Below are positions 1,201 to 25,088 of a DNA stretch of 64,000 nucleotides, in pieces. Position numbers and translations under genes: made by a program. The notes below the pieces were generated by a model. That model was given only the letters and a program-made list of their open reading frames with translations. It searched no databases and was not told the origin of the DNA. The stretch is taken from the IMG/VR virus record IMGVR_UViG_3300010399_000031, positions 62,001 through 126,000 of that record; one strand, given 5' to 3'. Within the stretch, counting starts at the first letter, position 1. Each line of letters starts with the position of its first letter.

Positions 1201-1923
1201 ATGGACCTTGCGCTTTTGGAAGCACTCACCGCTGAAGAGCATAGCGGTCGAAGACTTTATCTGGATATTCTTGAAGTTGCGTCACGACTGGAGCGCAACT
1301 ACGGTCATTACTTCAAACCCTATTTAGGAGAGCAGCTGTATTTTGATGGCGTAAGTCGCCCGATCCTGGATTTCGAAAAGAACACCTATCACTCGATGGT
1401 GGAGAAAGATCCACTAAGACCGGGTGAACTCGTGAGTGTGTCGATCCGCGACGCCAATGCGCTGCGTGAGGCGGATGTGTACGATCAACACGAGCGGCTG
1501 GTGGTGCGGGGTAAAGATGTGGTCAAATTGCGGGTGCAGCCAAGTGATCCTGTGCGCATGATGGATTTCATCGTGGAGTACGTCTCGGACTACTGCCACT
1601 CACGCATTCCCGCATTTGAAAAGAAAGGGCGAGGTCTTAATGAGATCTTCGAAAGTTTTCTCTCACCCGAGATGCTCGATGACTTTGAGGTCTTAAAGAA
1701 AAAGGACCCCAATGATGCGGAATACTTTGTCTCAGAAATCTTCTACTTGATCGATCCCTTGTTAGCCGAAGTGCGCGAATTCATGGGGCCGAACAAGTGG
1801 ATGATTTTCCTGGTCAGGCGCCAAGCGTTTGATTTGGTGCTCGACGCCTATCTAGACTACCGCATCTACGTCTATCATGAGCGACTCAAGCAAGAGCAGG
1901 ACGATACCTCATGCGAGTCGTAA
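1201..1923 (+). CDS. hypothetical protein, possible divergent member of tandem paralog array
   Basis: 240-aa ORF overlapping the next gene; C-terminal segment WMIFLVRRQAFDLVL. Confidence 0.7.
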   Translation: MDLALLEALTAEEHSGRRLYLDILEVASRLERNYGHYFKPYLGEQLYFDGVSRPILDFEKNTYHSMVEKDPLRPGELVSVSIRDANALREADVYDQHERLVVRGKDVVKLRVQPSDPVRMMDFIVEYVSDYCHSRIPAFEKKGRGLNEIFESFLSPEMLDDFEVLKKKDPNDAEYFVSEIFYLIDPLLAEVREFMGPNKWMIFLVRRQAFDLVLDAYLDYRIYVYHERLKQEQDDTSCES

Positions 1924-2378
1924 ATCAAGTATTTGTCATCTCGCTACAAGAGCCGGCGCTACTGGTCAAAGACTACATGCGCAAGTTCTACAGTCAGAGT
2001 GACGAAGAAATTTGCCGCTCCCCAGAGTTAGCCAACAAAGTTGCTAACTATCCGTGCATGACTTACATGGGGTTGCTCGCGCAAGCGATTTTTAACACCC
2101 CCGTCAGTCATGTGGGGAAAACCGATAAGGATCTGGAGCAAGCAGAAAAGCTGTTGATTTGGGATGGGATGAAACCCCAGGTTGTTGTTGAGTGTGCAAG
2201 ACGCAGTTTCGAGTTGTGTGTGGACATCATTGCCGCCACTATCCCCAATCTTGTCTTTTACGATGAGGGCGGAGTTGACTTTACCATGCTCAACGAGTTT
2301 GATCTGCGGGTGAATTTGCCCATCGACTTGGATAAGTTAGAAGAAAACCACATCGATGATATTTATCGAGGAGCCTAA
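1911..2378 (+). CDS. hypothetical protein, possible member of tandem paralog array
   Basis: 155-aa ORF overlapping its neighbours; N-terminal VFVIS strand, C-terminal FTMLNEFDLRV. Confidence 0.7.
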   Translation: MRVVNQVFVISLQEPALLVKDYMRKFYSQSDEEICRSPELANKVANYPCMTYMGLLAQAIFNTPVSHVGKTDKDLEQAEKLLIWDGMKPQVVVECARRSFELCVDIIAATIPNLVFYDEGGVDFTMLNEFDLRVNLPIDLDKLEENHIDDIYRGA

Positions 2379-2849
2379 GTGTACGTTATTCTGAATACGG
2401 ATGAATTAGTCCAGCGCTATATGGCCTATGATTCGTTGTTCAGCTTCTACGAAAACGGTATCAAAGATCTCATCAAGGATGCTGTCTTTGAAACCGGCAA
2501 GCGCAATAAGTTTCGCTTCATGGGGGAACGCCACCTCGAAGCGTACTGGGATCAGTCTTTAGCGGGACGGACCGCACGCGCTTGGGAAGAAGCCATCGAT
2601 ATGGCACTCGATCATAGCCCGCAGTCGGTGCAAGATTATCAGCAAGCGCATTACAAAGTGGATCGAGACGTGATTCACCTTGTCGCTGAGCAGATTGAGG
2701 AGGAAGCTGAGCAGTTGATTTTATCGCTGATCAAGGAAAGGAGCTTTAAGATTTTACACGTCAACCCAAAACACGTCAACGAGTGGATTGGTAACGATTT
2801 GGTAGTGGAGATCGCTCGCGTGCCGGAGGAGTACGATGGTTGCGCCTAA
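2379..2849 (+). CDS. hypothetical protein, tandem paralog array
   Basis: GTG start directly after previous stop; MYVILN...WIGNDLVV. Confidence 0.7.
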   Translation: MYVILNTDELVQRYMAYDSLFSFYENGIKDLIKDAVFETGKRNKFRFMGERHLEAYWDQSLAGRTARAWEEAIDMALDHSPQSVQDYQQAHYKVDRDVIHLVAEQIEEEAEQLILSLIKERSFKILHVNPKHVNEWIGNDLVVEIARVPEEYDGCA

Positions 2850-3306
2850 TCAGTTGGTTGCCGATTACACCCAATTTCCGGAGCACTTGATTCTGGACTT
2901 TGAAGATATCTTCTGGAGGATGCGGCGCGACGTATCGATGATCTATCCGCATGAGGTCGATTGGGACTTACTTTTCTCCAGGATGTTCTCTGGCCTTCAG
3001 CGCTTGGAGCAACGACGACTAGCGTATAGCGGTTGGCTTGAAAACCAAGACCTCATCGAACAGGTGCTCGACATTGCCAATGGAGATGAGATTTTCCCGG
3101 ACCTCTTTGATGTCAACAAGATGGAGCGCTTGTATCGCGTGTTAAAGCGAGCCGGGCTGGAAATCAAAGAGCGCCTTTTGACCCTCATGGCGTACCATCG
3201 CGGGGTTTTTCCCTATACCTACAGAACAATGATTTCCGATGGATGTCTATTCTTTTCTAGAAATGAAAGCATCTACGATACCCGAGTTCCTGATCCTGAA
3301 TTCTGA
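2836..3306 (+). CDS. hypothetical protein, tandem paralog array
   Basis: GGAGGAG upstream; PEHLILD...AYHRGVFPYTY...DGCLFF. Confidence 0.75.
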   Translation: MVAPNQLVADYTQFPEHLILDFEDIFWRMRRDVSMIYPHEVDWDLLFSRMFSGLQRLEQRRLAYSGWLENQDLIEQVLDIANGDEIFPDLFDVNKMERLYRVLKRAGLEIKERLLTLMAYHRGVFPYTYRTMISDGCLFFSRNESIYDTRVPDPEF

Positions 3307-3673
3307 GAACGAGGCTCGTGAGTTGGGCTTTCTGACTCAGTACTTCCCGGTTGAAGACGGAGAAGTGTTTTGCAACATTTTGGAGTGCATCGTTTACGAG
3401 AAAACAGCCGAATTGGAACTGGAGGTCCACCGGCGCGATGTACTAACGATGATGGTTGAAGACGGTCATGGTCTTTATGCTGAGAGCATGGCTAACTTGA
3501 TTCATCGGCTTGGTCAAACCGTTTTTCAGCAGTTGCGCGGCTTCGGGGCGTATTACAAGGGGTTTTTACCTTACTGCTATTGTCAAGACCTGGACGGAGA
3601 TCTCGTGCTGCGGGCATTGAGCTACCGAGATTTGCGTCTGCACTTTAAGGAAGACGAGGAAGAAAATGAATGA
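3263..3673 (+). CDS. hypothetical protein, tandem paralog array
   Basis: PEFLILN...AYYKGFLPYCY...DGDLVL; ATG 3263 preferred over 3239. Confidence 0.7.
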   Translation: MKASTIPEFLILNSENEARELGFLTQYFPVEDGEVFCNILECIVYEKTAELELEVHRRDVLTMMVEDGHGLYAESMANLIHRLGQTVFQQLRGFGAYYKGFLPYCYCQDLDGDLVLRALSYRDLRLHFKEDEEENE

Positions 3674-4073
3674 CCTGATCGAAGCTCAGGTCATTCCGCT
3701 CACCGTCATCGTACCTACGGAAGACTTGATTGCTGAGTTTAACCGAACGCTTTTTCCCCTCACCATCAGCGACTTCGATCTGCGCGAGATCATGACTCAG
3801 ATTTCTGAGCAGATCGACAGTTGCGATAAGAAAAGTACGTTTGAATTTTTCCGGCAGTTACCCAAGTTCGATCGTATAGTGTGTAAGCCATTTAGTGAAA
3901 CGATCGAGCGGCAACATCTGCTTAAGTGTGCGGTCTTCACTCTTGCTACCGGGTTGTATGATCGACTTGAAAACCTGCGGGTTTTTGATTCTTACCGGTT
4001 CATGAGTAAATTTCCGTACTGTTTTGATAAGATGGTGGGAAACGACGCAGTGTATTTCCACATCCCGTACTGA
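3666..4073 (+). CDS. hypothetical protein, tandem paralog array
   Basis: PLTVIVP...KFPYCFDKMVGNDAVY; overlaps previous stop. Confidence 0.75.
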   Translation: MNDLIEAQVIPLTVIVPTEDLIAEFNRTLFPLTISDFDLREIMTQISEQIDSCDKKSTFEFFRQLPKFDRIVCKPFSETIERQHLLKCAVFTLATGLYDRLENLRVFDSYRFMSKFPYCFDKMVGNDAVYFHIPY

Positions 4074-4103: not shown

Positions 4104-4514
4104 ATGTCTACTCAATACCAGATCGGGAGTACCTACTCCTTTAGTGTCTATCCGGTCGCGCAGCTTGGTAACAACTTCCAAAACATCCAAGTATTGGCGT
4201 TACTAGACGCCACCACGGTGCAGCAACTCGGCGTTGACATCTGGGCGATGCACAAAAACATCTACCCGACGCTACCAGCAGGCACCCCCAACGACCCGAC
4301 ACAGTTCCAGTATCTGCGCATCAAACTCCAGTCCGGCACGAGCACCATTATCGCGATCCCCTGGATCAACGATTCGACGGTGGAACTCGTGAGTGCCCAG
4401 ACGCTTGACGTGAAGATTTACAACGTTGATCCGGCCACCTGGATTCCGCGCGTGCAACTGGCCTTAGCTCAACTCGGCCTGAATAACGTCCAAGTCTCAG
4501 TGTTCACTGGATAG
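4104..4514 (+). CDS. conserved phiKZ-like beta-rich protein, likely virion-associated
   Basis: 136-aa ORF with strong codon bias, in the position just before the DNA polymerase gene. Confidence 0.55.
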   Translation: MSTQYQIGSTYSFSVYPVAQLGNNFQNIQVLALLDATTVQQLGVDIWAMHKNIYPTLPAGTPNDPTQFQYLRIKLQSGTSTIIAIPWINDSTVELVSAQTLDVKIYNVDPATWIPRVQLALAQLGLNNVQVSVFTG

Positions 4515-4554
4515 GATGTGAGTGCTTGATCAACTAGATTTTTTTAGTGGATCG

Positions 4555-4900
4555 CATATTCTCTGAGAAGGTAAAGGGCGAAACGTGACTCGTCCGGTTT
4601 GCTGGTTCAACCCCGTGGGCAGTGCGGCACAGGGGGAGTAACTGGAACTTTGGTGCCGGGAACACCTTAGAGCGTCACGACCGCTGTACCCGCTGGTGCC
4701 ACCTTAATCGAGTTGGCTGCTTTCCTTGGTGGCGGACCCGATGCATCCCGTGTTAAGACTTCACTCATCTTGATCCGGCGTCAGAACGGGTGTGCACCAG
4801 CACCTTTTGGTGTACCCATGTGTCCAGCCTTTTGACATGTGGCGCTGTTTTGAGCATTTGGAACCTCGCAAATTAGGGGAGGGCTTTGGCTCTCCCCGCC
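4555..4900 (+). ncRNA. candidate structured non-coding RNA (unknown family)
   Basis: No convincing ORF; nested complementary segments (4584-4589/4674-4679, 4625-4630/4653-4658, 4692-4699/4794-4801, 4698-4703/4728-4733, 4736-4740/4787-4791); promoter-like sequence upstream, terminator downstream. Confidence 0.4.
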
Positions 4901-4916
4901 TTTTTCTTTTATGCCC
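4876..4916 (+). terminator. intrinsic terminator followed by TATGCC
   Basis: GGGGAGGGC-TTTG-GCTCTCCCC, then T-tract and TATGCC. Confidence 0.8.
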
Positions 4917-4990
4917 TTATTTTTTTTTTGTCGTTACTTTTCTAGCGAGCGTATCAATAGTACGAGTGAAGATCCCCCACGGAGTAAAAG

Positions 4991-7219
4991 ATGGAACTGA
5001 ATAACCCTTTTGTCCTGAAACCCGAGGCTTATAAGCGAGATATCGATATTTTGCGCCACTATGTTGATCAAGCAGCTACGTATCTTGTCATCATGACTGG
5101 GAAGAATTATGCCGAGTGCATCAACTATGTGAAAAAGCAATTGGGTAAGGGCGGGCGATTTGAGTTTCAAGATCGTAAGATCACCTACGCTGAGCGCGGG
5201 GATAATGGTGATCGAGAGTTGAAAGAGGGCCCACTCTCGTGGTTCTTGACCACCTCGGTAAAAGAACAAGATATTATCGCCCCCACATTCACGACGTACT
5301 TGCACCCGAAGAAAAAGAAGTCGCTCTTTGCCATCTATATTGCGCTGGGTAAAAAACGCCGCAATAAAGCTAAGCACGAAATGTTCACAGCAGAGATGGC
5401 GCGAGATGATGCATTGAAGGTCAACGATACCGTTACAGCTACGGCTCAAGATCGACTCTATGCGTTTAAGAAGGTGGAGCAAGTCTACGCCAAACAAAAG
5501 AACAACTCTCTCTCGGGCGGACACAACTCCACTTCCACCACGCTTATCAATAAGACCGCCCACTCGACACTGACCTCCATTTGTCGGGCAACGTCCGGCT
5601 ATGGTAATGCGAACAACGAAAAGTTTCTTGCTGGTAATCGCCATTACTGGTCGCCAATGATCGCGACGAATAACATCGTCTCCATCGTGCGACATACTGA
5701 CTACAAACAGTTGCAGGCGGTTATCGAGAAGTATCAGATGTATTTACCCACAGCGCAAGATGTAATCGACGTGATCGATTACTCTGCCAAGCACTACTGG
5801 GGTCCGCACTGGAAGAGTACTGCTACCCATACTCGCCTGATGGAGATAGCTGCTCGCCTCACCCCTCTTCAGCGTGCCGCCTTTGTCTATACGGGTGATC
5901 TGTATCACATCCGTCAGTACAATTCGGACTTTGTGCGCACCTTGGTGATGGGATTATCCAAACGGGTCGATGTCGAACACCCCAATCCTCAAGAAGTCTT
6001 TAAGCGTTGCTTCGATGATCAGCGTAATTTGGCAATTGTGATTTGCTCACACGTCACCAAGGGGATCGACCCGGATAAACTGAAGGACCATCCCCATCCG
6101 TACGCTGTGACTGCCTCGACGATCGAAAACATCTACACTACGCTAGAAGAGTACGAGGATTTTATCAAGACGTTTTTCGTCACCGAGAACATGCCTGCCT
6201 CGATGGCTTATTTTCCGGAATCTATCCGGCATACGGCCTTGATGTCGGATACGGACTCCACCATCTTTACCGCTCAGGAATGGGTCGATTGGGCGTTTGG
6301 TCGAATCGGATTTAGCGACGAGGAAAATAATCTTTCTTCCGCTATGATTTACATGGCGTCAGCTTCGATCACTCATGTGCTTGCCAGGATGTCAGCCAAC
6401 ATGGGCGTCGATACATCGATGATCCACCAGATCGCGATGAAGAACGAGTACAAGTTTGACATCTTTGTACCGACCAACGAAGCAAAGCATTACTTTGCTT
6501 TGATTTCCTCGCAAGAAGGAAAGGTGTACAATAAGTTGAAGGAAGAGATCAAAGGAGTACACCTGAAGAACTCGAATGTCAATAAGTACATCATGGGGGT
6601 GGCTAAAAAGACCATGATCGAATCGATGGAGACGATCATGCGTGGCGAGATGATCGATCTGAAAGCGTACTTAAAACAGTTCGCTGATATCGAGCGCAGT
6701 ATCAAAGAATCGATCGAAAAGGGTTCACACGACTTCTTTCGTTTTGGACGAGTCAATCAACTGTCTTCCTATAAGCGCAAAGAAGATAAAGAAAAAGGTT
6801 GGATCGAACCTGAACATGATTGGATGGCAAGAACTCCCTATCGTTTTTACTTGCTCTGGAAAGAGGTCTTTGCACCATTTTACGGTGATGTGCCAGAGCC
6901 ACCCTATACGTGTTTGAAACTGTCATCAAATCTCGATACGATGGGTAAAACCAAGGAGTGGTTGGCGTCGATAGAGAACCGGGAGTTGGCTGATCGATTG
7001 ACCGAGTGGATGAAGAAGTACAAAAAGTCGTACCTTGGCATGGTGATGTTACCTGAGCAGATCGTGGCGATGCGCGGTATTCCGCCCGAATTGCTCAAGG
7101 TGGTTGATATACGCAACATGATCGTGGAGTCAACAGCGGTCTTCTATAAGCTGAGCGAAGCGTATGGCGTGTACATGCTTAACGATAAGAGAACTAAACT
7201 TTTTTTGGACTACTACTGA
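4991..7219 (+). CDS. family B DNA polymerase, polymerase-domain subunit (phiKZ gp50-like)
   Basis: Motif B AKQKNNSLSG and motif C LMSDTDSTIF; lacks exonuclease and motif A, which lie in 45002-46765. Confidence 0.88.
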   Translation: MELNNPFVLKPEAYKRDIDILRHYVDQAATYLVIMTGKNYAECINYVKKQLGKGGRFEFQDRKITYAERGDNGDRELKEGPLSWFLTTSVKEQDIIAPTFTTYLHPKKKKSLFAIYIALGKKRRNKAKHEMFTAEMARDDALKVNDTVTATAQDRLYAFKKVEQVYAKQKNNSLSGGHNSTSTTLINKTAHSTLTSICRATSGYGNANNEKFLAGNRHYWSPMIATNNIVSIVRHTDYKQLQAVIEKYQMYLPTAQDVIDVIDYSAKHYWGPHWKSTATHTRLMEIAARLTPLQRAAFVYTGDLYHIRQYNSDFVRTLVMGLSKRVDVEHPNPQEVFKRCFDDQRNLAIVICSHVTKGIDPDKLKDHPHPYAVTASTIENIYTTLEEYEDFIKTFFVTENMPASMAYFPESIRHTALMSDTDSTIFTAQEWVDWAFGRIGFSDEENNLSSAMIYMASASITHVLARMSANMGVDTSMIHQIAMKNEYKFDIFVPTNEAKHYFALISSQEGKVYNKLKEEIKGVHLKNSNVNKYIMGVAKKTMIESMETIMRGEMIDLKAYLKQFADIERSIKESIEKGSHDFFRFGRVNQLSSYKRKEDKEKGWIEPEHDWMARTPYRFYLLWKEVFAPFYGDVPEPPYTCLKLSSNLDTMGKTKEWLASIENRELADRLTEWMKKYKKSYLGMVMLPEQIVAMRGIPPELLKVVDIRNMIVESTAVFYKLSEAYGVYMLNDKRTKLFLDYY

Positions 7220-11904: not shown

Positions 11905-11969
11905 AAACTTGCATAGTGGTAACACTGTGTTTGCGCAAACATGTTTTCATCAAGGAAGAAAGGAAAATC

Positions 11970-13922
11970 ATGACTCTGAAGACCAATCAATCCCGTGGCG
12001 GTCAAACCTCGATGGGTGCAGCTTACGCTGAAGCATCGCAGCGTCAGCCTGGTGCACAAACGGGTGCGGAGACCACGCAGGGAATGCCGCGTGAAGGCGC
12101 TGTGTCGCCCGAGACGTTCAGCATTCGTCAAATGTCGGCGCTGTTCGAACTTCCGGCAGCCGCCAACACGCAGTCGGAAGTTCTGGCCAAGGCTCGCAGC
12201 GTCCTGGAGGCCGATGTCAAAGCCGTGCCGGATCAGCAGTTCGACATCAAGATCATCGGTCTTGATCGTGAAAACCCGGCGCTGCACATCGGCGTCTCGG
12301 TGATCGTGATCGGCGTCTCGGTTCGTCAGAACCAAAACTACGGCATGGGTTACCACGTTCTGCTGCTCGCCGCAAGCGCGCCGGAGCCGGGTACGCAAAC
12401 GTTCCAGTACGCGCAAAACCGCACCGTCGAAGTCAAGCAAGTGGTGGGCGATGCATGGGACGATATCATGCGCACCGAAGTGAATAAGGAGCTTCAGCGC
12501 ATGTTCCCGAACGTGCCGCTATACTCGGGTGAAGCGCGTGTCGTGCATACGAACTTCAACTGGGACGACCAGACGCGCGTGAAGACGTTGCGTGCCGAAG
12601 TCGTGACGGCTGCTGCGATGGCGCTGGCCAAGTCGTTGCCCGACTTCAAGGACGTGAACCTCAAGCGCATCGAAGTCGACAACACGCTCTCGCTCACGAC
12701 GCAGTTCAAGCAACCGCAGATCACCGATTCGACCGGTCTGCCGATTCGTGCCGACATCCGCATCACGTTCAAGGCCGGTCAAACGCAGCGCAACCCGAAT
12801 CAGCTACAATCGCCGAACACGGAAAAGCCCCAGGAGATCACCTCCATCGCCGGCTACATGGATCTGATCCACATTCGGCAAGCGGCGGCCAATCCGTATC
12901 TGGCTCCGCAGCAGCAAGTCGAGTACGATCCGGCCACGGGTCGTCCGGTACCGGTGCGCCCGTTCATTCCGCGTTTCGTGATCACGCGTCTGCGTTCGGG
13001 TCGTGCTGCGACGCTTTCGCAGCAGTTGCTCGGCCTCGTGACGGTCTTCACACTGCGTAAGCCCGGTGCATACTACCCGCAATTCAAACCCGATTACGGC
13101 GTTCAGAACAACGACGGTATCGATCTTCGGGATGTGGGTGCACTCGGCCTCGTGATGGTCAATCCGCAAACAGGAGCGCCGGTGGGTCGTATTCCGACTA
13201 AGCAAGATACGTTCCGGGAATCGGATCTGGGTATTTTGCTGCACTCGGCTTGCCGCGCTGGTCTTGTCGTCTCGATGGATATCGACGAGTGTGGTGATGA
13301 CACGTGGATGAACGCTCCGTTCGCGGAAGCGGCTCAGACCGTTAATCCGGCCAAACGTCAGGCAGCCACCGAGTTGTTGTTTGACTCGATGAACTATCTG
13401 ACTGCCGGTAAGTTGGCCAACCACTTCCAGCGCGGTGCGGAGATCTGCTTCAACGAAAACAACCGCATCATCAACGGCTACTACACTGGTCGGGGCGGCG
13501 CGCTGTGCGACGCTCGTGACCTGGACGAACTGGCGATGCTCAACCTGATGGGAGAGCGTGACATGAAGGTCGTCACGGACTGGGAAGATACCTATCTGCG
13601 TAGCGAGTTCCCGCTGGAACAACGACTCGACGCCCGACTGGAAACGATGAAGAACCTGATGCCGGATCTGAAGGTGACCGGTATGTCCACACGTGTGACC
13701 TTCACCGACGCCTTCTTGAAGGCATCCACGAAGGCTGTGGCCGAAACGGGTCTGACCATCAAGGAAGTCTCCGCGTGGGCTGGGATGCAAGGGTTCGATG
13801 CCCCGACGTACCAGTTCGCTGGTGTCGCACTCGGTGGTTACGAAGCGACGAATCTGTTCCAAGCAGCTGGTGGTGGTGGCATGGGAACGTCCTACACGGG
13901 CGGTACCGGGCGCTGGCGCTAA
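11970..13922 (+). CDS. chmA: chimallin, major nuclear shell protein (phiKZ gp54-like)
   Basis: 650 aa, very strong codon bias, own promoters and terminator, immediately upstream of the NADFDGD-containing RNAP subunit (conserved Chimalliviridae synteny). Confidence 0.85.
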   Translation: MTLKTNQSRGGQTSMGAAYAEASQRQPGAQTGAETTQGMPREGAVSPETFSIRQMSALFELPAAANTQSEVLAKARSVLEADVKAVPDQQFDIKIIGLDRENPALHIGVSVIVIGVSVRQNQNYGMGYHVLLLAASAPEPGTQTFQYAQNRTVEVKQVVGDAWDDIMRTEVNKELQRMFPNVPLYSGEARVVHTNFNWDDQTRVKTLRAEVVTAAAMALAKSLPDFKDVNLKRIEVDNTLSLTTQFKQPQITDSTGLPIRADIRITFKAGQTQRNPNQLQSPNTEKPQEITSIAGYMDLIHIRQAAANPYLAPQQQVEYDPATGRPVPVRPFIPRFVITRLRSGRAATLSQQLLGLVTVFTLRKPGAYYPQFKPDYGVQNNDGIDLRDVGALGLVMVNPQTGAPVGRIPTKQDTFRESDLGILLHSACRAGLVVSMDIDECGDDTWMNAPFAEAAQTVNPAKRQAATELLFDSMNYLTAGKLANHFQRGAEICFNENNRIINGYYTGRGGALCDARDLDELAMLNLMGERDMKVVTDWEDTYLRSEFPLEQRLDARLETMKNLMPDLKVTGMSTRVTFTDAFLKASTKAVAETGLTIKEVSAWAGMQGFDAPTYQFAGVALGGYEATNLFQAAGGGGMGTSYTGGTGRWR

Positions 13923-17409: not shown

Positions 17410-18540
17410 ATGGCCATGAAGGTTAAGAAGATTCATCTGGCTACCCTCAGTGACCTGCATCTCGGACATCGTCGCAATAGTGCATCGGAGATCATAGCGA
17501 ATCTCCGGTGTACTATTGACGACAGTGTTCGAACTTCCCAACTCGACATCATCTTCTTGGCCGGAGACGTTTTCGACGACTTGCTTTTACTCAATAACGA
17601 CGAAGTACTCGAAATCGACCTGTGGATTTATTGGTTGATGACGTTATGCGTAAAATACGACATCGTACTGAGAGTGTTAGAAGGCACTCCCAGACATGAT
17701 CGCAAACAATCGAAGCGGTTTGAGTTGATCAACGAGGTGATGGGTAAACCGGTTGATTTGAAGTATATCACTGATATTTCGGTGGAACACATCGAACGCT
17801 TTGGTATTGATGTGCTTTATGTTCCGGACGAAGCCACGGAGTCGCCAGAGAAAACGCTTGGCGTTGTCAAAGAGGTGATGGCAGCGCGAGGGTTAGAGCA
17901 AGTTGATTTTGCCATCATGCATGGTTGCTTCGATTACCAGATCCCCTATCTGGCAAGTGACCACAAGCATGATTCTCAAGCCTATTTAGCGCTGGTACGT
18001 TACCTGATTTTTATCGGTCACGTACACATGTTTAGTCAACTAGACCGTATCACAGCGCAAGGTTCCTTTGATCGTCTCTCCCACGGTCAAGAAGAACCTA
18101 AAGGACATGTTCGTGCAACCGTATATCAAAATGGAGAAAGAGAGGTTACTTTTGTTGAGAACACGAACGCGAAGAAGTTCGTTACGCTCAAGTGCCAGGA
18201 GAATACGCTGGAAGAAACATTGGTTGAAATTCACGAGTTGGTGCAAACACTGCCGCCGCATTCTCATGTCCGATTGGATTTGAATGCGGATCACCCGCTT
18301 TTAGCCAGCACCGACACGTTGATTCGACGCTTTCCCATGATAACGTGGGAGAAGATTGTTCGCGAGACAGGAGAGGAATCTGTCATTGCAGAGGCTGATG
18401 CAAGCGAGGAAGAGTATACCCCGATCACGATTACACGTGATAACATCGTTCAAATGGTGATGTATCGGGTGGCCCTTCACCCGGAAATTACCAACGATTT
18501 ACTGGTACTTGCACAGGAGCAACTGGAAAAGGTGATCTAA
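17410..18540 (+). CDS. SbcD/Mre11-like metallophosphoesterase nuclease
   Basis: SDLHLG, AGDVFD, GTPRHD, MHG and IGHVH motifs. Confidence 0.88.
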   Translation: MAMKVKKIHLATLSDLHLGHRRNSASEIIANLRCTIDDSVRTSQLDIIFLAGDVFDDLLLLNNDEVLEIDLWIYWLMTLCVKYDIVLRVLEGTPRHDRKQSKRFELINEVMGKPVDLKYITDISVEHIERFGIDVLYVPDEATESPEKTLGVVKEVMAARGLEQVDFAIMHGCFDYQIPYLASDHKHDSQAYLALVRYLIFIGHVHMFSQLDRITAQGSFDRLSHGQEEPKGHVRATVYQNGEREVTFVENTNAKKFVTLKCQENTLEETLVEIHELVQTLPPHSHVRLDLNADHPLLASTDTLIRRFPMITWEKIVRETGEESVIAEADASEEEYTPITITRDNIVQMVMYRVALHPEITNDLLVLAQEQLEKVI

Positions 18541-19404
18541 ATGAGTGCCAGTACGCGTCATCTATCGGAAAGAACCATCGGTCAATACCCCATCTCGGTG
18601 GGGACTTCCTTGGCCATTGAATCGGCTATGGGGATTCACCCAGAAATCGAGGTCAAGTTCCAACCGATTAAGCAATACGGGGAGTTTTGGATCAACCTGA
18701 AGACGCTGTATCGAAACATGATGGGTTCGCTCCAAGCGGACGCAGCGCAGCTTGTGTTGGGTGTACCGGTAGGGGATGAATTGCAATTAGAGATGGATCG
18801 AATCGATTCAATTATTGCAAGTGAATCCGATTGCCAAGTCATCTACTATGTGTGTAACTACACACGTATGGATCAGCGCTATCCACATGCTCGGATTCGA
18901 GTCGATAGTACTCCGCGCCAAAAGCAATTTACACAGACAATGAAGGAGGCAATCCAACATTTGCTGATGTTAGAGACGAAACCAGCAGGGCAGCAGCATG
19001 AGTCTAGGATGAAAGTGTTTGATGTTACACTCAAACCCACCGAACGAACTAAAACGCTGATCCTCACCCACGTACCGCTTGATCTGTGTAGTTATAAGCA
19101 CTTCGGTGAATTAGCGCTTTTGGAAAGTCACACGGGTGCAATCAAAGAAAAAGCGCAATGGTACACCAAGTATCTTAACGGTAAAGAGTTGGCCCGTATC
19201 CCGTTTCGGGAAGATTTGTTGCAAGTGTTTGGTGATCACGAGTTGTTCCATCCGTATCCAATTGAGAATCGCAAACAGCTAATCGCCGTGGCTGAGAAAT
19301 ATAGTTTGACCCCTTTAACAACCACCGAGAAGATTCGATATACCCTCGATTTCTTACTCAATCCGTATCTGAAGGAGAAGTTAAGAGCAATGTTGGTTCC
19401 CTGA
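18541..19404 (+). CDS. conserved core protein, possible divergent 5-prime nuclease/FEN-like fold
   Basis: 287 aa, abuts SbcD; WINLKTLYRN and ILTHVPLDL...ESHTG weakly resemble T4 RNase H blocks. Confidence 0.4.
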   Translation: MSASTRHLSERTIGQYPISVGTSLAIESAMGIHPEIEVKFQPIKQYGEFWINLKTLYRNMMGSLQADAAQLVLGVPVGDELQLEMDRIDSIIASESDCQVIYYVCNYTRMDQRYPHARIRVDSTPRQKQFTQTMKEAIQHLLMLETKPAGQQHESRMKVFDVTLKPTERTKTLILTHVPLDLCSYKHFGELALLESHTGAIKEKAQWYTKYLNGKELARIPFREDLLQVFGDHELFHPYPIENRKQLIAVAEKYSLTPLTTTEKIRYTLDFLLNPYLKEKLRAMLVP

Positions 19405-19413
19405 AAAAACACC

Positions 19414-19426
19414 ATAAATTTTTACT
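19414..19426 (+). promoter_or_regulatory. middle-promoter-like element
   Basis: ATAAATTTTTACT identical to 11762-11774. Confidence 0.55.
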
Positions 19427-19522
19427 TCTTCACGGAAAATAACCGAAGAAGTAGTGGGAATTTACGCAGTCGATCCATTTTCTGGATGCGTCCATACATC
19501 AATTTCGTCTGAGCAAAAAAAC

Positions 19523-20266
19523 ATGGCATACGACAACAACCGCAGTGGCGGATACAGCGGTCCGCGCACCGAACGCCCGAAGAACATGCTGGATGACTTC
19601 CGTGTGAGTCTATCGGCACCGAGTACCGCCAAGGGTAAGTGGGCTTCGTTGAAATGGAGCTACGCGGGAAATCAAGTCGGTCTCACGATGTACTCCAATG
19701 ACCCAGCTGACGAGAAGAAGTCCGTGCGCATTCAGATGCCACCGACCGATTTCTGCCGGATCTTGGTGTTGCTGGAGATGGCGATCAACTTCCCGGAGCA
19801 GGGTGATCACAAAGTCTGGATGGAGTACAGTGACTACATGTGGTTCAATCGGGAAAAGAGCAAAGAAGTCAAACTCCAAGGCACGGTCTACATCGGCAAG
19901 AAAGACGGCGTCGTCTGGATGTCGCTTGTCTCCTACGACAAGAGTCGCCCGCGCATCAAGTTCCCCTTCGGTAACACCATGTACACGGCGCTCTACAAGA
20001 GCGACGGCTCAGCCATGACCGATGCGGAAACCTCGGTCATCTCCGCGAAAGCGAACCTGATGTTCCTTCAACATACGATCCCGACCGTGGCTAATGCGCA
20101 CTACAAGCATCGCGAATCGAGCGCAGTGAAGAAAGATGGTGACGAACGTAGTAGTAACTCCAGTAGTGGCGGAGGTGGAGGTTACTCCAGCGACTCTCGC
20201 TCGGGTTCGGGTAACAACAATGCCGCACCGGATGAAGACGGATATAGTGACGACATACCTTTTTAA
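19523..20266 (+). CDS. chmC: ChmC-like nucleus-associated nucleic-acid-binding protein (phiKZ gp67 position)
   Basis: Directly upstream of the gp68-like subunit; folded core followed by G/S-rich disordered tail ending DDIPF. Confidence 0.6.
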   Translation: MAYDNNRSGGYSGPRTERPKNMLDDFRVSLSAPSTAKGKWASLKWSYAGNQVGLTMYSNDPADEKKSVRIQMPPTDFCRILVLLEMAINFPEQGDHKVWMEYSDYMWFNREKSKEVKLQGTVYIGKKDGVVWMSLVSYDKSRPRIKFPFGNTMYTALYKSDGSAMTDAETSVISAKANLMFLQHTIPTVANAHYKHRESSAVKKDGDERSSNSSSGGGGGYSSDSRSGSGNNNAAPDEDGYSDDIPF

Positions 20267-20329
20267 GGATTTCGTTGCGAAGTGAGTAGGGTAAGAGGAA
20301 GATCTCTTGATCTTCCTCGATTGAAAAGA

Positions 20330-20347
20330 AATTGAGCGATATATTAC
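20330..20347 (+). promoter_or_regulatory. early-promoter-like element
   Basis: AATTGAGCGATATATTAC contains TATATTAC; preceded by a 10-bp hairpin at 20295-20318. Confidence 0.65.
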
Positions 20348-20391
20348 CTCCAGAGTAGTTAGAGTGGACTACGTTTGAGGAGAAAGTTGTT

Positions 20392-21963
20392 GTGAAAATC
20401 AACACTGATCGAATGGGGATGTATAGTCCTCAGACGGACGCGCAGATGTCGCATAATGGTATTGTCATTACGTGGAACTACGCGGCATTTAAGAAACAAC
20501 AAGGAAAGGAGGGTCAATCAACGGGGTTGTTTGTCGAGATCAATGATTACTGGGAGTATGTCGCCAAGGATCATCCTGCGGTGGTTGACCAGATTTTTAG
20601 CGTCTATCTGCGGATCAAAGACACATTCGAGAATACGGAAAACACCAAAACCCTTACTAGTACGCTCGTACCGTTACTTGAAGAGTTGTATAAATTGCAC
20701 CCGATCGAATCACTTGATCATTGGGTGCGTTTCTATTCGGGAATCAGGATCCCGGAGAAGATCGAAAAGGAGTTCGTCGAAAGCGACGAGCTTTCTAACA
20801 CGCGACTTAAGACATACACGCGAGAGGACTATCACAAGTTACTCGTGTTAGCGCTTGCATTTCGTGCAGTGGTTCCAGTGTGGGGTGAGCTTATCGCCTA
20901 TACCGAGAAACACAAAATCCTCGGCACTAATTGGAAAGAATACAGTGCTTATCAGTTGCTTAACCGAACTGCACTGATGAACTGCGAAGCCATGGTCAAG
21001 CTTCGTGGGTATGTGAATGCTTTCATTCCGACAGATAAAACCAAGCGACCCCATTCTGCCATCATGGCTGGGGTGGGAACTGAGGATTTCCCTGAGTGGT
21101 TACTTGGTGTTATCGTTTTTCGACGTGTGTGCAATGGAGACATTCGTAACACCAATCCAGACACTCACTTGGTGAGTTCTATTCATAGCTACATTCTGAA
21201 TAAACTCAACCCGAGCGAGTCCAGTTTCATCGGACGCGTGCGGGAGAAGAACAGTCGCAAGGAAGGTGAAGGTGACGATAACAAACTCTCTCGTCTGGAA
21301 GGTTACAAGATCCGGCAAGAGTTAGCAGAAGGGGACATCGCCATGATCGTCCACTCTGCGCGTGACCCATATCGCTTGGCGCGTGCTGTCTCACAAAGTG
21401 TTGATTTGGCTTTGGTGGAGGAAGCTTTGGAATCAACCAAGGCGCTTCTCGGAGTTCACATCCAACAACCGCAATTGACGATCATGCAATGGGTGCTGGC
21501 GGACGGCATCAAACCGCGTGGTTTGCAGTATCTTCCCAAACCGGTGTTTTTACAAGCCATGGCAGTGGCACAAGCTGTACTCTGGCATAAGGGTCACTAC
21601 GCAATTGCTGGACTCGTGAGTGCTGAGGCTGAGGTAGGGGACGCCGAATTTAGCGAGGTGAACATGGGTGGTCATGGGCGAATTTCCAAGGAGTTGACGG
21701 AACATTTGGCCATCACGCATCCGTACCACCTGCGCCCAAGTGGTAAGCAGCAAAAAGAAAGTGGTCGCTTGCAAAATAGCGCCGTGGTTTCCATTGACTT
21801 GGTGACCAAGCAATTCGATCAGTATGGTTGGTTGTTGACCTTGCCGAGTGACAAGATCAAACTTATCAACCTGAATATGGCAACGCGTCGATTCGTCCTT
21901 CCCAATGACATTCGCAGTCAGCTTGCCAAACTCGCTATAGACATCGCAACTGGGAGTCTTTAA
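20392..21963 (+). CDS. non-virion RNA polymerase sigma-like subunit (phiKZ gp68-like)
   Basis: 523 aa, size and position between ChmC-like and PicA-like genes match gp68. Confidence 0.7.
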   Translation: MKINTDRMGMYSPQTDAQMSHNGIVITWNYAAFKKQQGKEGQSTGLFVEINDYWEYVAKDHPAVVDQIFSVYLRIKDTFENTENTKTLTSTLVPLLEELYKLHPIESLDHWVRFYSGIRIPEKIEKEFVESDELSNTRLKTYTREDYHKLLVLALAFRAVVPVWGELIAYTEKHKILGTNWKEYSAYQLLNRTALMNCEAMVKLRGYVNAFIPTDKTKRPHSAIMAGVGTEDFPEWLLGVIVFRRVCNGDIRNTNPDTHLVSSIHSYILNKLNPSESSFIGRVREKNSRKEGEGDDNKLSRLEGYKIRQELAEGDIAMIVHSARDPYRLARAVSQSVDLALVEEALESTKALLGVHIQQPQLTIMQWVLADGIKPRGLQYLPKPVFLQAMAVAQAVLWHKGHYAIAGLVSAEAEVGDAEFSEVNMGGHGRISKELTEHLAITHPYHLRPSGKQQKESGRLQNSAVVSIDLVTKQFDQYGWLLTLPSDKIKLINLNMATRRFVLPNDIRSQLAKLAIDIATGSL

Positions 21964-23567
21964 TGAACGAAACAACCGCACTGATGTCCCGTCCCCGTGG
22001 TTTTGGTCATGTTCCCGCAGAAGCCAAAATCACCAAACTGCTGATTTACGAAACCGGTGAATACAATCGGCAGTGGAGTCGTCCTTACACGACCAACTTC
22101 GACGGGCATGTCCTGAATCAATTCCACGAGCAGTTGCAAGGGCTCGACCATTACGCACCGGCAAACTTCACCGGCATCGCGCAGAGCTTCATCAAGCCAG
22201 CTGCACAAGTCGATCTTAACGGTGGCGGTATTGCCATCCCGCAAGGTTGGAATAGCCGCCGGTGTCGCTTCATGATGGTCGTCGAGTACGACGGACACCT
22301 CGGGATGCGCATGCAGGAAATCCTCACGGGTTGGACCGAGGGCGTTGGTGCCATGCCGCAAGGGGGTATCCTTCACCATGAAGCGCAACCCCTGATGGTT
22401 GACAACGACATGATCTTCTATGTCAATTCGACCATTCAGTTGCAGGTGAAAAGTGAGTTCGGACCTGCTGGTCATCGTGAGACGATGGCGGTGGCTAAAA
22501 ATTCCCACGTTCTTGCCGATCCGAAGTACGGTTCGATCTTCACCCCCGGTACACAAGAGCGCATGCGCCCGACCGATCTGTTTGCTGTGATGAGTCGCTC
22601 GCATCTGCATGCGGTGCGCGATGAGTATGGCAACATCCCTGGTGTGGGTCCGCGTCTATTCGATGGTCGCAATGCGATGACCAACATGGCGGCGCTTTCG
22701 CTGCGCAGCAATGTGATTCCGGCCGCGTACATGTCGCGCGTGATGGATAACTATCACAACGCGGCGGTGACCAACAACGATCCGAGCAAAGCCAACGGCG
22801 ACTTCTACACGAACGCGCGTACGTATTCCAACGATGGGTTGGTGAGCAACGACGAAGTGCTGCGGATGTTGGCTGATCTGCGGGGCGAGCCGATTGGCAA
22901 TACGTTCCGATTCCGAGATTTGGTCAGGCTCGATCCGACCATTCAAGGTCGAGCGCTTGGTCGGTGTTCGGGGCGCACCGAGAAGATCACGGGGTTGCAC
23001 CAAGCTGGGATGACCAAAGAGTGGGACGGTCGTGATGCGGTGACGCTGGCTGCCACCATCATCAGTCAGTGTGTGCCGGGTATCATGGCCGATCTTGCAC
23101 TGACCGTGATGCATTTCCGTACGCACAATGAGATGGCTGTCTCGGGCAACTATTCAGCTGTCGATCCGACCACGTTCTTGGGTCGGCCAGGTCGAGAGCC
23201 GGACTTTGCGATTATCAATGTCGCTGGGTTTGGTGATCAAGATCTGGGTCCGGGGATGTACGCGTTCGAGAAACGCTTCTGGTTCGAAGTGATGAAGGAC
23301 CTGTGCTTTGACAACCAGATTCGTTTCATGCTGGAGGTCAATTGCAATCTGACGGGCGAGACCGTGGTGAACATCTCGCTCGATGGTCGCCCGATTGAAC
23401 AGTTCGTCACACCGTCGTTTGCTGATGCGCTACTCACCCCGCTTGTCACCAACGACCACAACCACGTGGTTCAAGTGGCTAACGATTTTAATCAATTACT
23501 CACAGCCGTCGTACCGACGACGGATGCAGCGTCATCCACGGCGTTCTTCAACGACGACTCATTCTAA
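21963..23567 (+). CDS. picA: nuclear protein import factor PicA/Imp1 (phiKZ gp69-like)
   Basis: 534 aa, translationally coupled (TAATG) to the gp68-like gene; synteny. Confidence 0.65.
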   Translation: MNETTALMSRPRGFGHVPAEAKITKLLIYETGEYNRQWSRPYTTNFDGHVLNQFHEQLQGLDHYAPANFTGIAQSFIKPAAQVDLNGGGIAIPQGWNSRRCRFMMVVEYDGHLGMRMQEILTGWTEGVGAMPQGGILHHEAQPLMVDNDMIFYVNSTIQLQVKSEFGPAGHRETMAVAKNSHVLADPKYGSIFTPGTQERMRPTDLFAVMSRSHLHAVRDEYGNIPGVGPRLFDGRNAMTNMAALSLRSNVIPAAYMSRVMDNYHNAAVTNNDPSKANGDFYTNARTYSNDGLVSNDEVLRMLADLRGEPIGNTFRFRDLVRLDPTIQGRALGRCSGRTEKITGLHQAGMTKEWDGRDAVTLAATIISQCVPGIMADLALTVMHFRTHNEMAVSGNYSAVDPTTFLGRPGREPDFAIINVAGFGDQDLGPGMYAFEKRFWFEVMKDLCFDNQIRFMLEVNCNLTGETVVNISLDGRPIEQFVTPSFADALLTPLVTNDHNHVVQVANDFNQLLTAVVPTTDAASSTAFFNDDSF

Positions 23568-23582
23568 ATAGTAGGAGTAGCT

Positions 23583-25088
23583 ATGGAATTGCTTCCTTTG
23601 TACAAGTCAATCCTCAAGGCGGGGCACTTGGTGGTTGATGACGAAGGGTTCATCAAGCGGATTTGGAAGGGAAAGAAAGAGCCGTGGCTTATCAACGGTA
23701 AATCCGTGGTTCTTCCCACGGATGCACAGTTAAAGACACCCTCGGCTGAAACAATCGTCTTCCATCCGCTGTTTGAATTCCTCACGCGTGCGGAATCGGA
23801 AGTGACGGCTGAGTATCGCCGCACAGTTACGGAGCGACTGCATCTGTCGTTTCTGGCGCTGGCAAGCGAGTTGCTCACGATCGCCGCTTCTCAGGACATG
23901 CACGCCAAGCTCACTCCTGAACAGTCGGAGTTTCTCTCGTTCGTGCCGGAGGCCGACGGGCAGATGCTCAAAACGTTCGAAGAGTTGTGCGACGCCATGC
24001 CGGAGGGGCAAAATCAGAAGGCATTCGTCTCGATGTATCTAAAACGTGGCGGCATCGTGCAAGGTAAGTCAGCTCACCGAGCAGCGATCGTCACGTTCCC
24101 GTTGTACAAGCAGTTGGTGGAAGACGGGCAAAAACGTGAAGCGGAGATGAATGCGCGCAAGCACGTACCAAAGAAGAAGGATGAGAAAAAGGAGGAAGAA
24201 AAACTCCTACCTATTCCGAACGAGACGTATGGCGTGAAGTTGCGCAAGATCGATCGGGAGGCGTTTATCAAACTCTTCGAGTACATGGTGCCGGGCATCG
24301 CCGAAGTCGATTCGTATTCAGCTACATCGAATAGCAACATCGCGCCGTCGATGGATGCGATCATGCACGCGGTACAGAACTTGGCTGCGCCACTGAATGA
24401 CATGGTTGAGCGTTTCAAGGGGAAGTTGTCGGAAAGCGCGCAGATCATTTTGCGTGTTGAAGATGCCTGGGTGCCGGAGTTTGTCAATTTGGCTCCGCTA
24501 CAAGTGCAAATTCGAATGATTCCGATGCAAGATGGTAACGATGGTGCGTTGCCAGTTGCGGCAGATAAGAAAGCAGCAGAAGCGGAAGCGTACGCCAGTC
24601 CTCCGAAAGCGGTCCCGGTTACAAGCGCTCAGGCGGGCCAAGCTCAACCGAGTGGCGTCTCAGCGGTCGGAGAAGAGCACGCCCCGCCAGGATTTCGCCT
24701 ACCACCGAAGAATCCCCAGCAACCGGCTACCCCGACGTATTCTGGAGCACCTGTTGTTGCCCCGCCTCCACCGCCGCCTGCCTATCCGGCATATCAACCC
24801 CAAGTCGGCTATCCTCCACCGTACGCCGCAGTCCCACAGATGGCTCCTCCCGCTGCACCGCCGGTCGCCATGCCGGGCGTACATCCGTCGCTTGCCGCCT
24901 TTGCAGCCCCGTACATGGCTTCAATGGCTGCACCCTATGTGGCTCAACAAGACATGCCTACGTGGGCCTATGGGGGTGGTACACAACGGCCGGTGCAGTC
25001 GCAAGGTTATCCTCAACAACAAGGTTACCCCACCGCACCGCAAGGGTATGGTTACGGGGTGCCTGGTACGTCTCGTGGGGATTTCTAA
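23583..25088 (+). CDS. conserved core protein (phiKZ gp70 position) with P/A/Q/Y/G-rich C-terminal tail
   Basis: 501 aa; last ~170 aa are low complexity. Confidence 0.65.
   Translation: MELLPLYKSILKAGHLVVDDEGFIKRIWKGKKEPWLINGKSVVLPTDAQLKTPSAETIVFHPLFEFLTRAESEVTAEYRRTVTERLHLSFLALASELLTIAASQDMHAKLTPEQSEFLSFVPEADGQMLKTFEELCDAMPEGQNQKAFVSMYLKRGGIVQGKSAHRAAIVTFPLYKQLVEDGQKREAEMNARKHVPKKKDEKKEEEKLLPIPNETYGVKLRKIDREAFIKLFEYMVPGIAEVDSYSATSNSNIAPSMDAIMHAVQNLAAPLNDMVERFKGKLSESAQIILRVEDAWVPEFVNLAPLQVQIRMIPMQDGNDGALPVAADKKAAEAEAYASPPKAVPVTSAQAGQAQPSGVSAVGEEHAPPGFRLPPKNPQQPATPTYSGAPVVAPPPPPPAYPAYQPQVGYPPPYAAVPQMAPPAAPPVAMPGVHPSLAAFAAPYMASMAAPYVAQQDMPTWAYGGGTQRPVQSQGYPQQQGYPTAPQGYGYGVPGTSRGDF

Follow-up and report, generated by a model that had tools for sequence, protein, structure and literature searches.

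We analysed a stretch of 64,000 nucleotides (nt), hereafter called the window, which corresponds to bases 62001-126000 of the IMG/VR record IMGVR_UViG_3300010399_000031 (243,403 bp, estimated to be 81% complete). An array of small genes is located upstream of the DNA polymerase gene in this window. The original prediction, which was made from the sequence, described six overlapping open reading frames (ORFs) in the array. All six ORFs are present on the + strand, overlapping or abutting each other, and all the peptides quoted from them were found in the ORFs. They are designated A to F here. Of the quoted peptides, 'RRLYLD' and 'AFDLVL' belong to A, 'QVFVIS' and 'NEFDLRV' to B, and 'MYVILN' and 'WIGNDLVV' to C. 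A (1201-1923, 240 amino acids (aa)) is the orthologue of phiKZ gp43 and PhiPA3 gp039 according to an iterated hidden Markov model (HMM) search. B (1911-2378, 155 aa) is a conserved small ORF with a family of its own, and its orthologues are located in the same slot of related loci. C (2379-2849, 156 aa) starts with GTG. D (2836-3306, 156 aa) is preceded by a strong GGAGG ribosome-binding site, and it is followed by E (3239-3673, 144 aa) and F (3666-4073, 135 aa). The original prediction missed an upstream ORF of similar look, Z (810-1193, + strand), whose orthologues are collinear in Burkholderia phage FLC9 and in many IMG/VR loci. At the 3' side, the array is anchored by G (4104-4514, + strand, 136 aa), which is SH3DP, the orthologue of phiKZ gp49. 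G was identified by PF20287, 'SH3 fold domain associated with phage DNA polymerases' (E-value 1e-35; 122.5 bits against a gathering cut-off of 25), and by phrog_3235 (E-value 8e-38). For Z and A to F, nothing meaningful was detected by Pfam, PHROGs and NCBIfam scans. In megablast and tblastn searches against named phages, neither the region nor F was matched.

The genes of the array are closely packed. A and B overlap by 13 nt, B and C are adjacent, and the overlaps of C/D, D/E and E/F are 14, 68 and 8 nt, respectively. The ribosome-binding sites of C, D and F are purine-rich. The start of E is uncertain (ATG at 3239 or 3263), and neither candidate has a clear ribosome-binding site; the length of 144 aa is also found in close relatives. 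Between the SH3DP gene and the polymerase gene (4991-7219, + strand), a noncoding gap of 476 nt is present (4515-4990). A strong terminator-like hairpin followed by a T run is located in this gap at 4876-4897 on the + strand, with a 9-bp stem including seven G-C pairs; it was recognized only as a match to the consensus. Because of this hairpin, the array and the polymerase gene may be separate transcription units.

By pairwise BLASTP among the six ORFs, only the pairs D-E (E-value 0.002) and E-F (E-value 0.08) were detected, both at collinear C-terminal positions. Next, 16 and then 80 related IMG/VR loci were collected using the SH3DP gene and the polymerase gene as anchors, the orthologues of each slot were aligned, and the resulting profiles were compared by hhalign. 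The E-values were 2e-15 for D-E, 1e-13 for D-F and 2.6e-16 for E-F, with probabilities of 98-99%, and the matches span about 119 columns, which is essentially the full length. In the D-E controls, where the target was reversed or column-shuffled, the E-values were 0.27 or higher. As judged from these profiles, D, E and F are certain to be true paralogs, in accord with the C-terminal signature that the original prediction had found clearest in the last three ORFs. Chance similarity among unrelated hypothetical ORFs would agree with the barely significant BLASTP values. It would also agree with the single-sequence tblastn search against 50,697 phage records, where F was unmatched. However, the profile-profile E-values with clean controls argue against it, as do the 1,160 family members in public data and the confident AlphaFold2 model described below. 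We regard chance as extremely improbable in general, and for C, D, E and F it is refuted by the profile E-values with their controls.

The F family also matches the C family by hhalign (89.7% probability, E-value 1.8e-6), and the alignment extends end to end over 121 columns. The N-terminal motif 'I-L-p-T-x-e-L-v' and the C-terminal motif 'W/f-i/l-G-n-D-L/I-V' are aligned in register. The reversed control gave an E-value of 0.042, and the shuffled controls gave 0.22 or higher. C was also recruited by an iterated HMM seeded from F. When larger merged profiles were used (the D/E/F super-alignment, with C added, and with 147 library hits added), the link to C, which is specific to the F subfamily, was weakened. 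As the E-value of F-C is 1.8e-6 and those of the controls are 0.04 or higher, C is likely to be a distant fourth member of the family.

The D/E/F family is large, old and previously undescribed. According to a profile search of 1.84 billion representative proteins, it comprises 1,160 clusters (50% identity) at an E-value of 0.001 or less, and 398 clusters at 1e-10 or less. The mean column identity across the family is 9%. FLC9 and dozens of IMG/VR contigs share the collinear gene order Z-A-B-C-D-E-F-G-polymerase; the polymerases of these contigs are only 40-49% identical to that of the window. The number of D/E/F copies detectable by sequence between A and G was counted in 67 distinct loci containing A, G and the polymerase, including those of phiKZ type. 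Three copies are present in 35 loci, none in 16, one in nine and two in five; one locus has four copies and another has six (range 0-6). The A-to-G interval is 1.2-3.7 kb long, with a median of 2.2 kb. A tandem array with six to seven D/E/F-type ORFs in the A-G interval was observed at L076 5354-7434 (IMGVR_UViG_3300037323_000212), and corresponds to a lineage-specific expansion.

Copies are also found elsewhere in the genomes. In the genome of the window, at least three more D/E/F-family genes, which the original prediction also missed, are located outside the window: 165292-165780, an adjacent ORF ending at 166174, and 175077-175448. The first two are a tandem pair and the third stands alone; all of them are distant from the replication genes. 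Two dispersed copies occur in FLC9 as well, near 185 kb. In the FLC9 record, the D orthologue (L001 4781-5311, + strand) is unannotated, and an antisense ORF (gp6, L001 4823-5188, - strand) is annotated instead, which is probably a mis-annotation. In several lineages (L010 6381-7589, L050 6467-7720, P0152, P0158 and P0176), the E-slot protein consists of one D/E/F domain and a tail of 100-250 aa; the tails are charged and probably disordered. The possibility that these long E-slot ORFs (239-417 aa) are two-copy fusions was rejected, since each of them is one domain with a charged tail. Thus, no Rosetta-stone support for a hetero-oligomer was obtained.

These features bear on the possibility that the array encodes fast-evolving host-interaction or counter-defence proteins, which are in the operon by happenstance. 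The proteins are small, extremely divergent and multi-copy, with lineage-specific tandem expansions up to six or seven copies as well as dispersed copies, and no known domain was detected. However, the order and copy number are fixed over a very deep divergence, as indicated by the polymerase identities. Furthermore, in a transposon screen of phiKZ, orf47 and orf48 were without disruptive insertions; these genes are the positional counterparts of E and F, and such a result is unusual for accessory counter-defence genes. We consider the host-interaction explanation to be improbable.

The structure of F was predicted by AlphaFold2 using a 116-sequence family alignment. The model is confident, with a mean predicted local distance difference test (pLDDT) score of 89.1 and a predicted template modelling (pTM) score of 0.85. 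It consists of a strand (residues 13-16), three helices (19-29, 36-49 and 55-62), a short helix, a long helix (80-103) and a hairpin (118-124 and 127-132). The original prediction had guessed an N-terminal strand and a C-terminal hairpin from the sequence, and both of them are seen in the model: 'TVIV' (13-16) forms the N-terminal strand, and 'YCFDKMV / DAVYFH' (118-124, 127-132) forms the C-terminal beta hairpin with the turn at G-N. The predicted fold of the family is thus an alpha/beta fold of about 135-155 aa, in which a strand at the N-terminus is followed by a body made mostly of helices, a single long helix and a beta hairpin at the C-terminus.

No structural analogue was found in the PDB. 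The best Foldseek match of F in the PDB has an E-value of 0.36, the shape search of the ESM Atlas gave nothing above a template modelling score (TM-score) of 0.38, and the sequence-profile search of the PDB gave nothing meaningful. A clamp-like ring of single-domain subunits had been considered, and it was dropped because the F model is mostly helical and no clamp-like match was obtained. In the top 50 Foldseek matches of F in BFVD, all the named matches are uncharacterised small proteins from jumbo phages, and one phage often contributes several of them. The matched phages are RP12, RSL2, Eowyn, Desertfox, Mortimer, Ea35-70, Noxifer, Phabio, EL, Psa21 and PS119XW. PhiPA3 gp044, which is the homologue of phiKZ Imp2, is at rank 13 (E-value 0.024, TM-score 0.35).

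The original prediction stated that phiKZ genes around gp47 and gp48 are accessory factors for cargo-specific import, and the literature agrees with it. In phiKZ, the escape from EcoRI-Nlp1 maps to orf47 (Imp2), where Nlp1 is gp152, a UvsX/RecA homologue. Imp2 is needed for the import of Nlp1, and Imp2 itself is imported in an Imp1-dependent manner. The escape from EcoRI-TopA maps to orf48 (Imp4) and orf287 (Imp5), and Imp4 is needed for the import of TopA. Imp2 and Imp4 were thus recovered by genetics, as cargo-specific factors dependent on Imp1; the role of Imp2 is known from phiKZ and PhiPA3, and that of Imp4 from phiKZ. For Imp2, Imp4 and Imp5, conservation was reported in phiKZ-like phages of Pseudomonas only, and a function as specific adaptors was proposed (bioRxiv 10.1101/2024.03.27.586873); in a later preprint they are termed cargo-specific adaptors. 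The gene order of phiKZ is gp43, 44, 44.1, 45, 46, 47 (Imp2), 48 (Imp4), 49 (SH3DP) and 50 (polymerase), and that of PhiPA3 is equivalent. Thus, the two import factors are encoded directly upstream of gp49 and gp50.

The array and the phiKZ genes can be compared by their flanks. For A, an HMM built from 52 sequences outside the phiKZ clade matches gp43 at an E-value of 8.9e-11 before the inclusion of gp43. The direct hhalign comparison is weak (E-value 0.0022, 57 columns), and the C-terminal hairpin and the D-Y-R-I motif of A match residues ~100-157 of gp43. Whereas A has 240 aa, gp43 has 357 aa with an extra C-terminal half; both of them mark the 5' edge of the array. As A corresponds to gp43, G corresponds to gp49 and the intervals are similar, the slots correspond to each other, and the A-G interval is equivalent to phiKZ gp44-gp48. 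According to these orthologous flanks, F is located in the Imp4 slot, directly upstream of SH3DP and the polymerase. E is located in the Imp2 slot, as the second gene upstream of SH3DP and the polymerase and downstream of the gp43 orthologue. When the polymerase tree is rooted at its midpoint, D/E/F members can be detected on either side of the root. Even the lineages nearest to the phiKZ crown group (L082, L063, L096 and L078) have one detectable D/E/F member, in slot -1 or -2, namely the Imp4 or Imp2 slot.

In order to compare the folds, Imp4 was modelled by AlphaFold2 from a phiKZ-type Imp4 99% identical to gp48, using a 20-sequence alignment. The order of elements as read from this model, which has a pLDDT of 66, is the same as that of F (strand-helix-helix-helix-long helix-strand-strand). 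The top-50 BFVD lists of F and Imp4 have 12 entries in common, all of which belong to Chimalliviridae, and the top-30 lists of AFDB clusters have two in common. As the position, the order of elements, the overlapping weak Foldseek neighbours and the presence of D/E/F members in those slots of sister lineages point in the same direction, D/E/F are probably homologous to Imp2 and Imp4.

Several results weigh against this homology. No hhalign link was detected between D/E/F or C and any phiKZ-type array family (best probability 13.8%). The cluster of gp47 (c7) gave at most 4.9% against D/E/F or C, and the Imp4 profile gave at most 0.9% against the F or D/E/F profiles. The HMM of the D/E/F family finds nothing in the phiKZ or PhiPA3 genomes. 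The Imp4 model is of moderate quality: the pLDDT is about 80-85 at the termini, and less than 50 in the middle third, which is unreliable. The Foldseek neighbours that Imp4 shares with F are individually insignificant (E-values of 0.5-1.6), and the TM-score between F and PhiPA3 gp044 is just 0.35. The merged profiles mentioned above showed no connection to Imp2, Imp4, B or Z. Apart from this evidence, the PhiPA3 Imp2 query returned only itself in a word-indexed homologue search, and the Imp4 alignment returned 11 proteins. As a separate observation, in two 201phi2-1-like contigs (L092 7159-8017 and L093 7167-8025), the Imp4-type gene is tandemly duplicated, with two members of cluster c6 side by side. 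Array duplication therefore also occurred in the phiKZ clade.

The original prediction proposed that the six ORFs are paralogs with one expanded fold. This proposal holds for D, E and F and likely for C, and it is not supported for A and B, which are not separated from the controls. By hhalign against D/E/F, B gave an E-value of 0.013 over 113 columns (0.025 with the reversed control), and Z gave 0.014 over 106 columns (0.035 with the reversed control). No comparison of A was below 0.09. Thus, the sequence profiles do not place A, B and Z in the D/E/F family. A wider explanation is that the whole array, including Z, A and B, and phiKZ gp43N-gp48 belong to a single fold family with seven paralogs in the window. 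According to alignment-averaged Chou-Fasman profiles, every array family begins with a strand that leads straight into a helix, continues with helices in the middle and ends with strands that follow a long helix. The same profiles reproduce the AlphaFold2 patterns of F and Imp4. This common layout is compatible with one fold and proves nothing, as the method is crude. The best D/E/F alignments to B and Z are full length and collinear, and the Imp4 model weakly matches its own presumed array neighbours in 201phi2-1 (B3FK49, B3FK53 and B3FK54), where the mapping of genes is inferred from the accession numbering. On the other hand, the E-values of B and Z are no better than those of the reversed controls, A has about 90 extra residues, and the stored ESM Atlas model of B is unusable (pLDDT 0.45). 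A single fold for the whole array is possible, and we place it somewhat below an even likelihood.

The rest of the window shows the type of phage in question. The polymerase is a family B DNA polymerase of phiKZ type (742 aa, gp50 orthologue). By tblastn it matched 300 phage records, with FLC9 at the top (46% identity), and phiKZ and PhiPA3 at about 36%. Chimallin, the nuclear shell protein, is encoded at 11916-13922 on the + strand (PF25677, E-value 3.9e-33; phrog_4795, E-value 2e-80). The PicA-like protein that the original prediction had placed at 21963-23567 (+ strand) is indeed a homologue of phiKZ gp69 (Imp1/PicA), with an E-value of 1.4e-34 and 26% identity, and it is the proposed docking partner. 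Since both chimallin and the Imp1/PicA homologue are encoded, the sequence identifies the phage as a deeply diverged nucleus-forming jumbo phage of Chimalliviridae type, not phiKZ. The neighbours of the Imp1/PicA homologue, from gp65-like to gp70-like, are syntenic with phiKZ. The syntenic region (17410-25088) corresponds to gp65-gp70 and contains an SbcD-like nuclease, a gp66-like gene, a gp68-like RNA polymerase subunit, the Imp1/PicA homologue and a gp70-like gene, together with a gp67 (Imp6/ChmC)-like gene assigned by its position. A non-virion RNA polymerase subunit is encoded in the window. A further Imp1/PicA homologue, P0032, is filed as Paraburkholderia sp. BCC1886 on a 286-kb contig, which is probably a jumbo-phage genome inside a bacterial assembly.

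Based on these results, C to F are taken to be ancient tandem duplicates of one small alpha/beta protein. As the best-supported reading, we propose that D/E/F correspond to Imp2 and Imp4 and are probably their highly diverged homologues, from which a role as import adaptors would follow. We regard this proposal, taken as a whole, as evenly balanced between right and wrong. The data demonstrate the paralogy, the conserved synteny, the lack of a structural analogue and the correspondence in position, and from these the homology to Imp2 and Imp4 and the adaptor function are inferred. Each copy would bind one cargo; the cargoes known in phiKZ are the DNA-metabolism enzymes Nlp1 (UvsX/RecA-like) and host TopA. 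At the chimallin shell, the copy would then present this cargo to a dedicated interface on Imp1/PicA and be imported along with it. Thus, adaptors or co-imported escorts would be encoded beside the replication genes whose products they help into the nucleus. The fact that a recombinase and a topoisomerase are the phiKZ cargoes fits the location of the array beside replication genes. When the Imp1 homologue, E and F were combined in one complex prediction, each with its own alignment, the score was 0.00 ('no answer'), which speaks neither for nor against binding. No match to the Pfam RecA model was obtained in the phage genome; this result is uninformative, as the record is estimated to be 81% complete and the UvsX-like protein of phiKZ is possibly too divergent for the model.

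A further-reaching form of this proposal is that the D/E/F fold represents the ancestral cargo adaptor of the phage nucleus in the whole family, with Imp2 and Imp4 among its diverged members. Through duplication, both in tandem and to dispersed sites, every DNA-metabolism cargo (UvsX-like recombinase, topoisomerase and perhaps polymerase) would then have obtained an adaptor of its own, each with a separate interface on Imp1/PicA. We put this form forward tentatively and consider it doubtful.

The main rival to an adaptor role is that the array proteins are replisome or DNA-metabolism accessory factors inside the nucleus, which for example tether or load polymerase partners, and that the import phenotypes of phiKZ reflect piggy-back entry or retention. 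The synteny with the polymerase weighs against the adaptor proposal in that it fits a replication role equally well. Across the family, the array always accompanies the SH3DP and DNA polymerase genes. Imp2 is itself nuclear, its dependent cargo and that of Imp4 are a RecA/UvsX-like protein and topoisomerase I, and the lack of transposon insertions in orf47 and orf48 resembles that of core replication genes. However, the array is separated from the polymerase gene by the terminator-like hairpin, the searches revealed no fold of a nucleic-acid-binding protein or an enzyme, further copies are located far from the replication genes, and the escape mutations of phiKZ specifically abolished import. 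We judge accessory replication factors to be unlikely, and the host-interaction explanation described above is weaker still.

The idea of import factors has already been published for phiKZ (bioRxiv 10.1101/2024.03.27.586873). What appears to be new is a very large defined family with a confident fold model, no PDB analogue and an ancient tandem paralogy, together with the constant position of this family in a gene block that is conserved throughout the nucleus-forming phages. The view of Imp2 and Imp4 as diverged members of this family, and not as inventions specific to Pseudomonas phages, is a proposal that also appears to be new. No description of the D/E/F family or of this proposal was found in open-access papers and preprints. 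Imp2, Imp4 and Imp5 are the only cargo-specific factors known for the admission of proteins through the chimallin shell. According to our proposal, cargo-specific import factors may exist across the whole phage family. If the array is the family-wide equivalent, cargo adaptors would belong to the ancient core of nucleus-forming phages, and duplication of adaptor genes would explain the licensing of new cargoes. In that case, a testable function would be assigned to an undescribed family of 1,160 clusters. For import studies in phages that infect Burkholderia, Ralstonia and other hosts, the array offers concrete candidates.

Finally, the array is compared with known systems. Imp4 (gp48) and PhiPA3 gp045 resemble F in the slot next to the SH3DP gene, in size (127 and 135 aa, respectively) and in the order of elements. 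In contrast, no sequence similarity is detectable, and the hairpin motif is P-x-D-x-x-G-T-F-G-F-V-V in Imp4, whereas it is F-P-Y-x-F...G-N-D-x-V in F. Imp2 (gp47) and PhiPA3 gp044 resemble E in the second slot upstream of SH3DP, and a C-terminal tail is present in some lineages of both groups; the 201phi2-1-type Imp2 homologues (268-284 aa) also have such a tail. Unlike D/E/F, Imp2 has an N-terminal extension, and the low TM-score of gp044 to F (0.35) and the lack of a profile link also set the two groups apart. The cargo adaptors of the eukaryotic importin type have no structural or sequence relation to the array proteins, and in place of a nuclear pore, the phage nucleus has a protein lattice with Imp1 as its gate. 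The resemblance is limited to the proposed logic: in both systems, a soluble adaptor would link a specific cargo to the gate of the nucleus.

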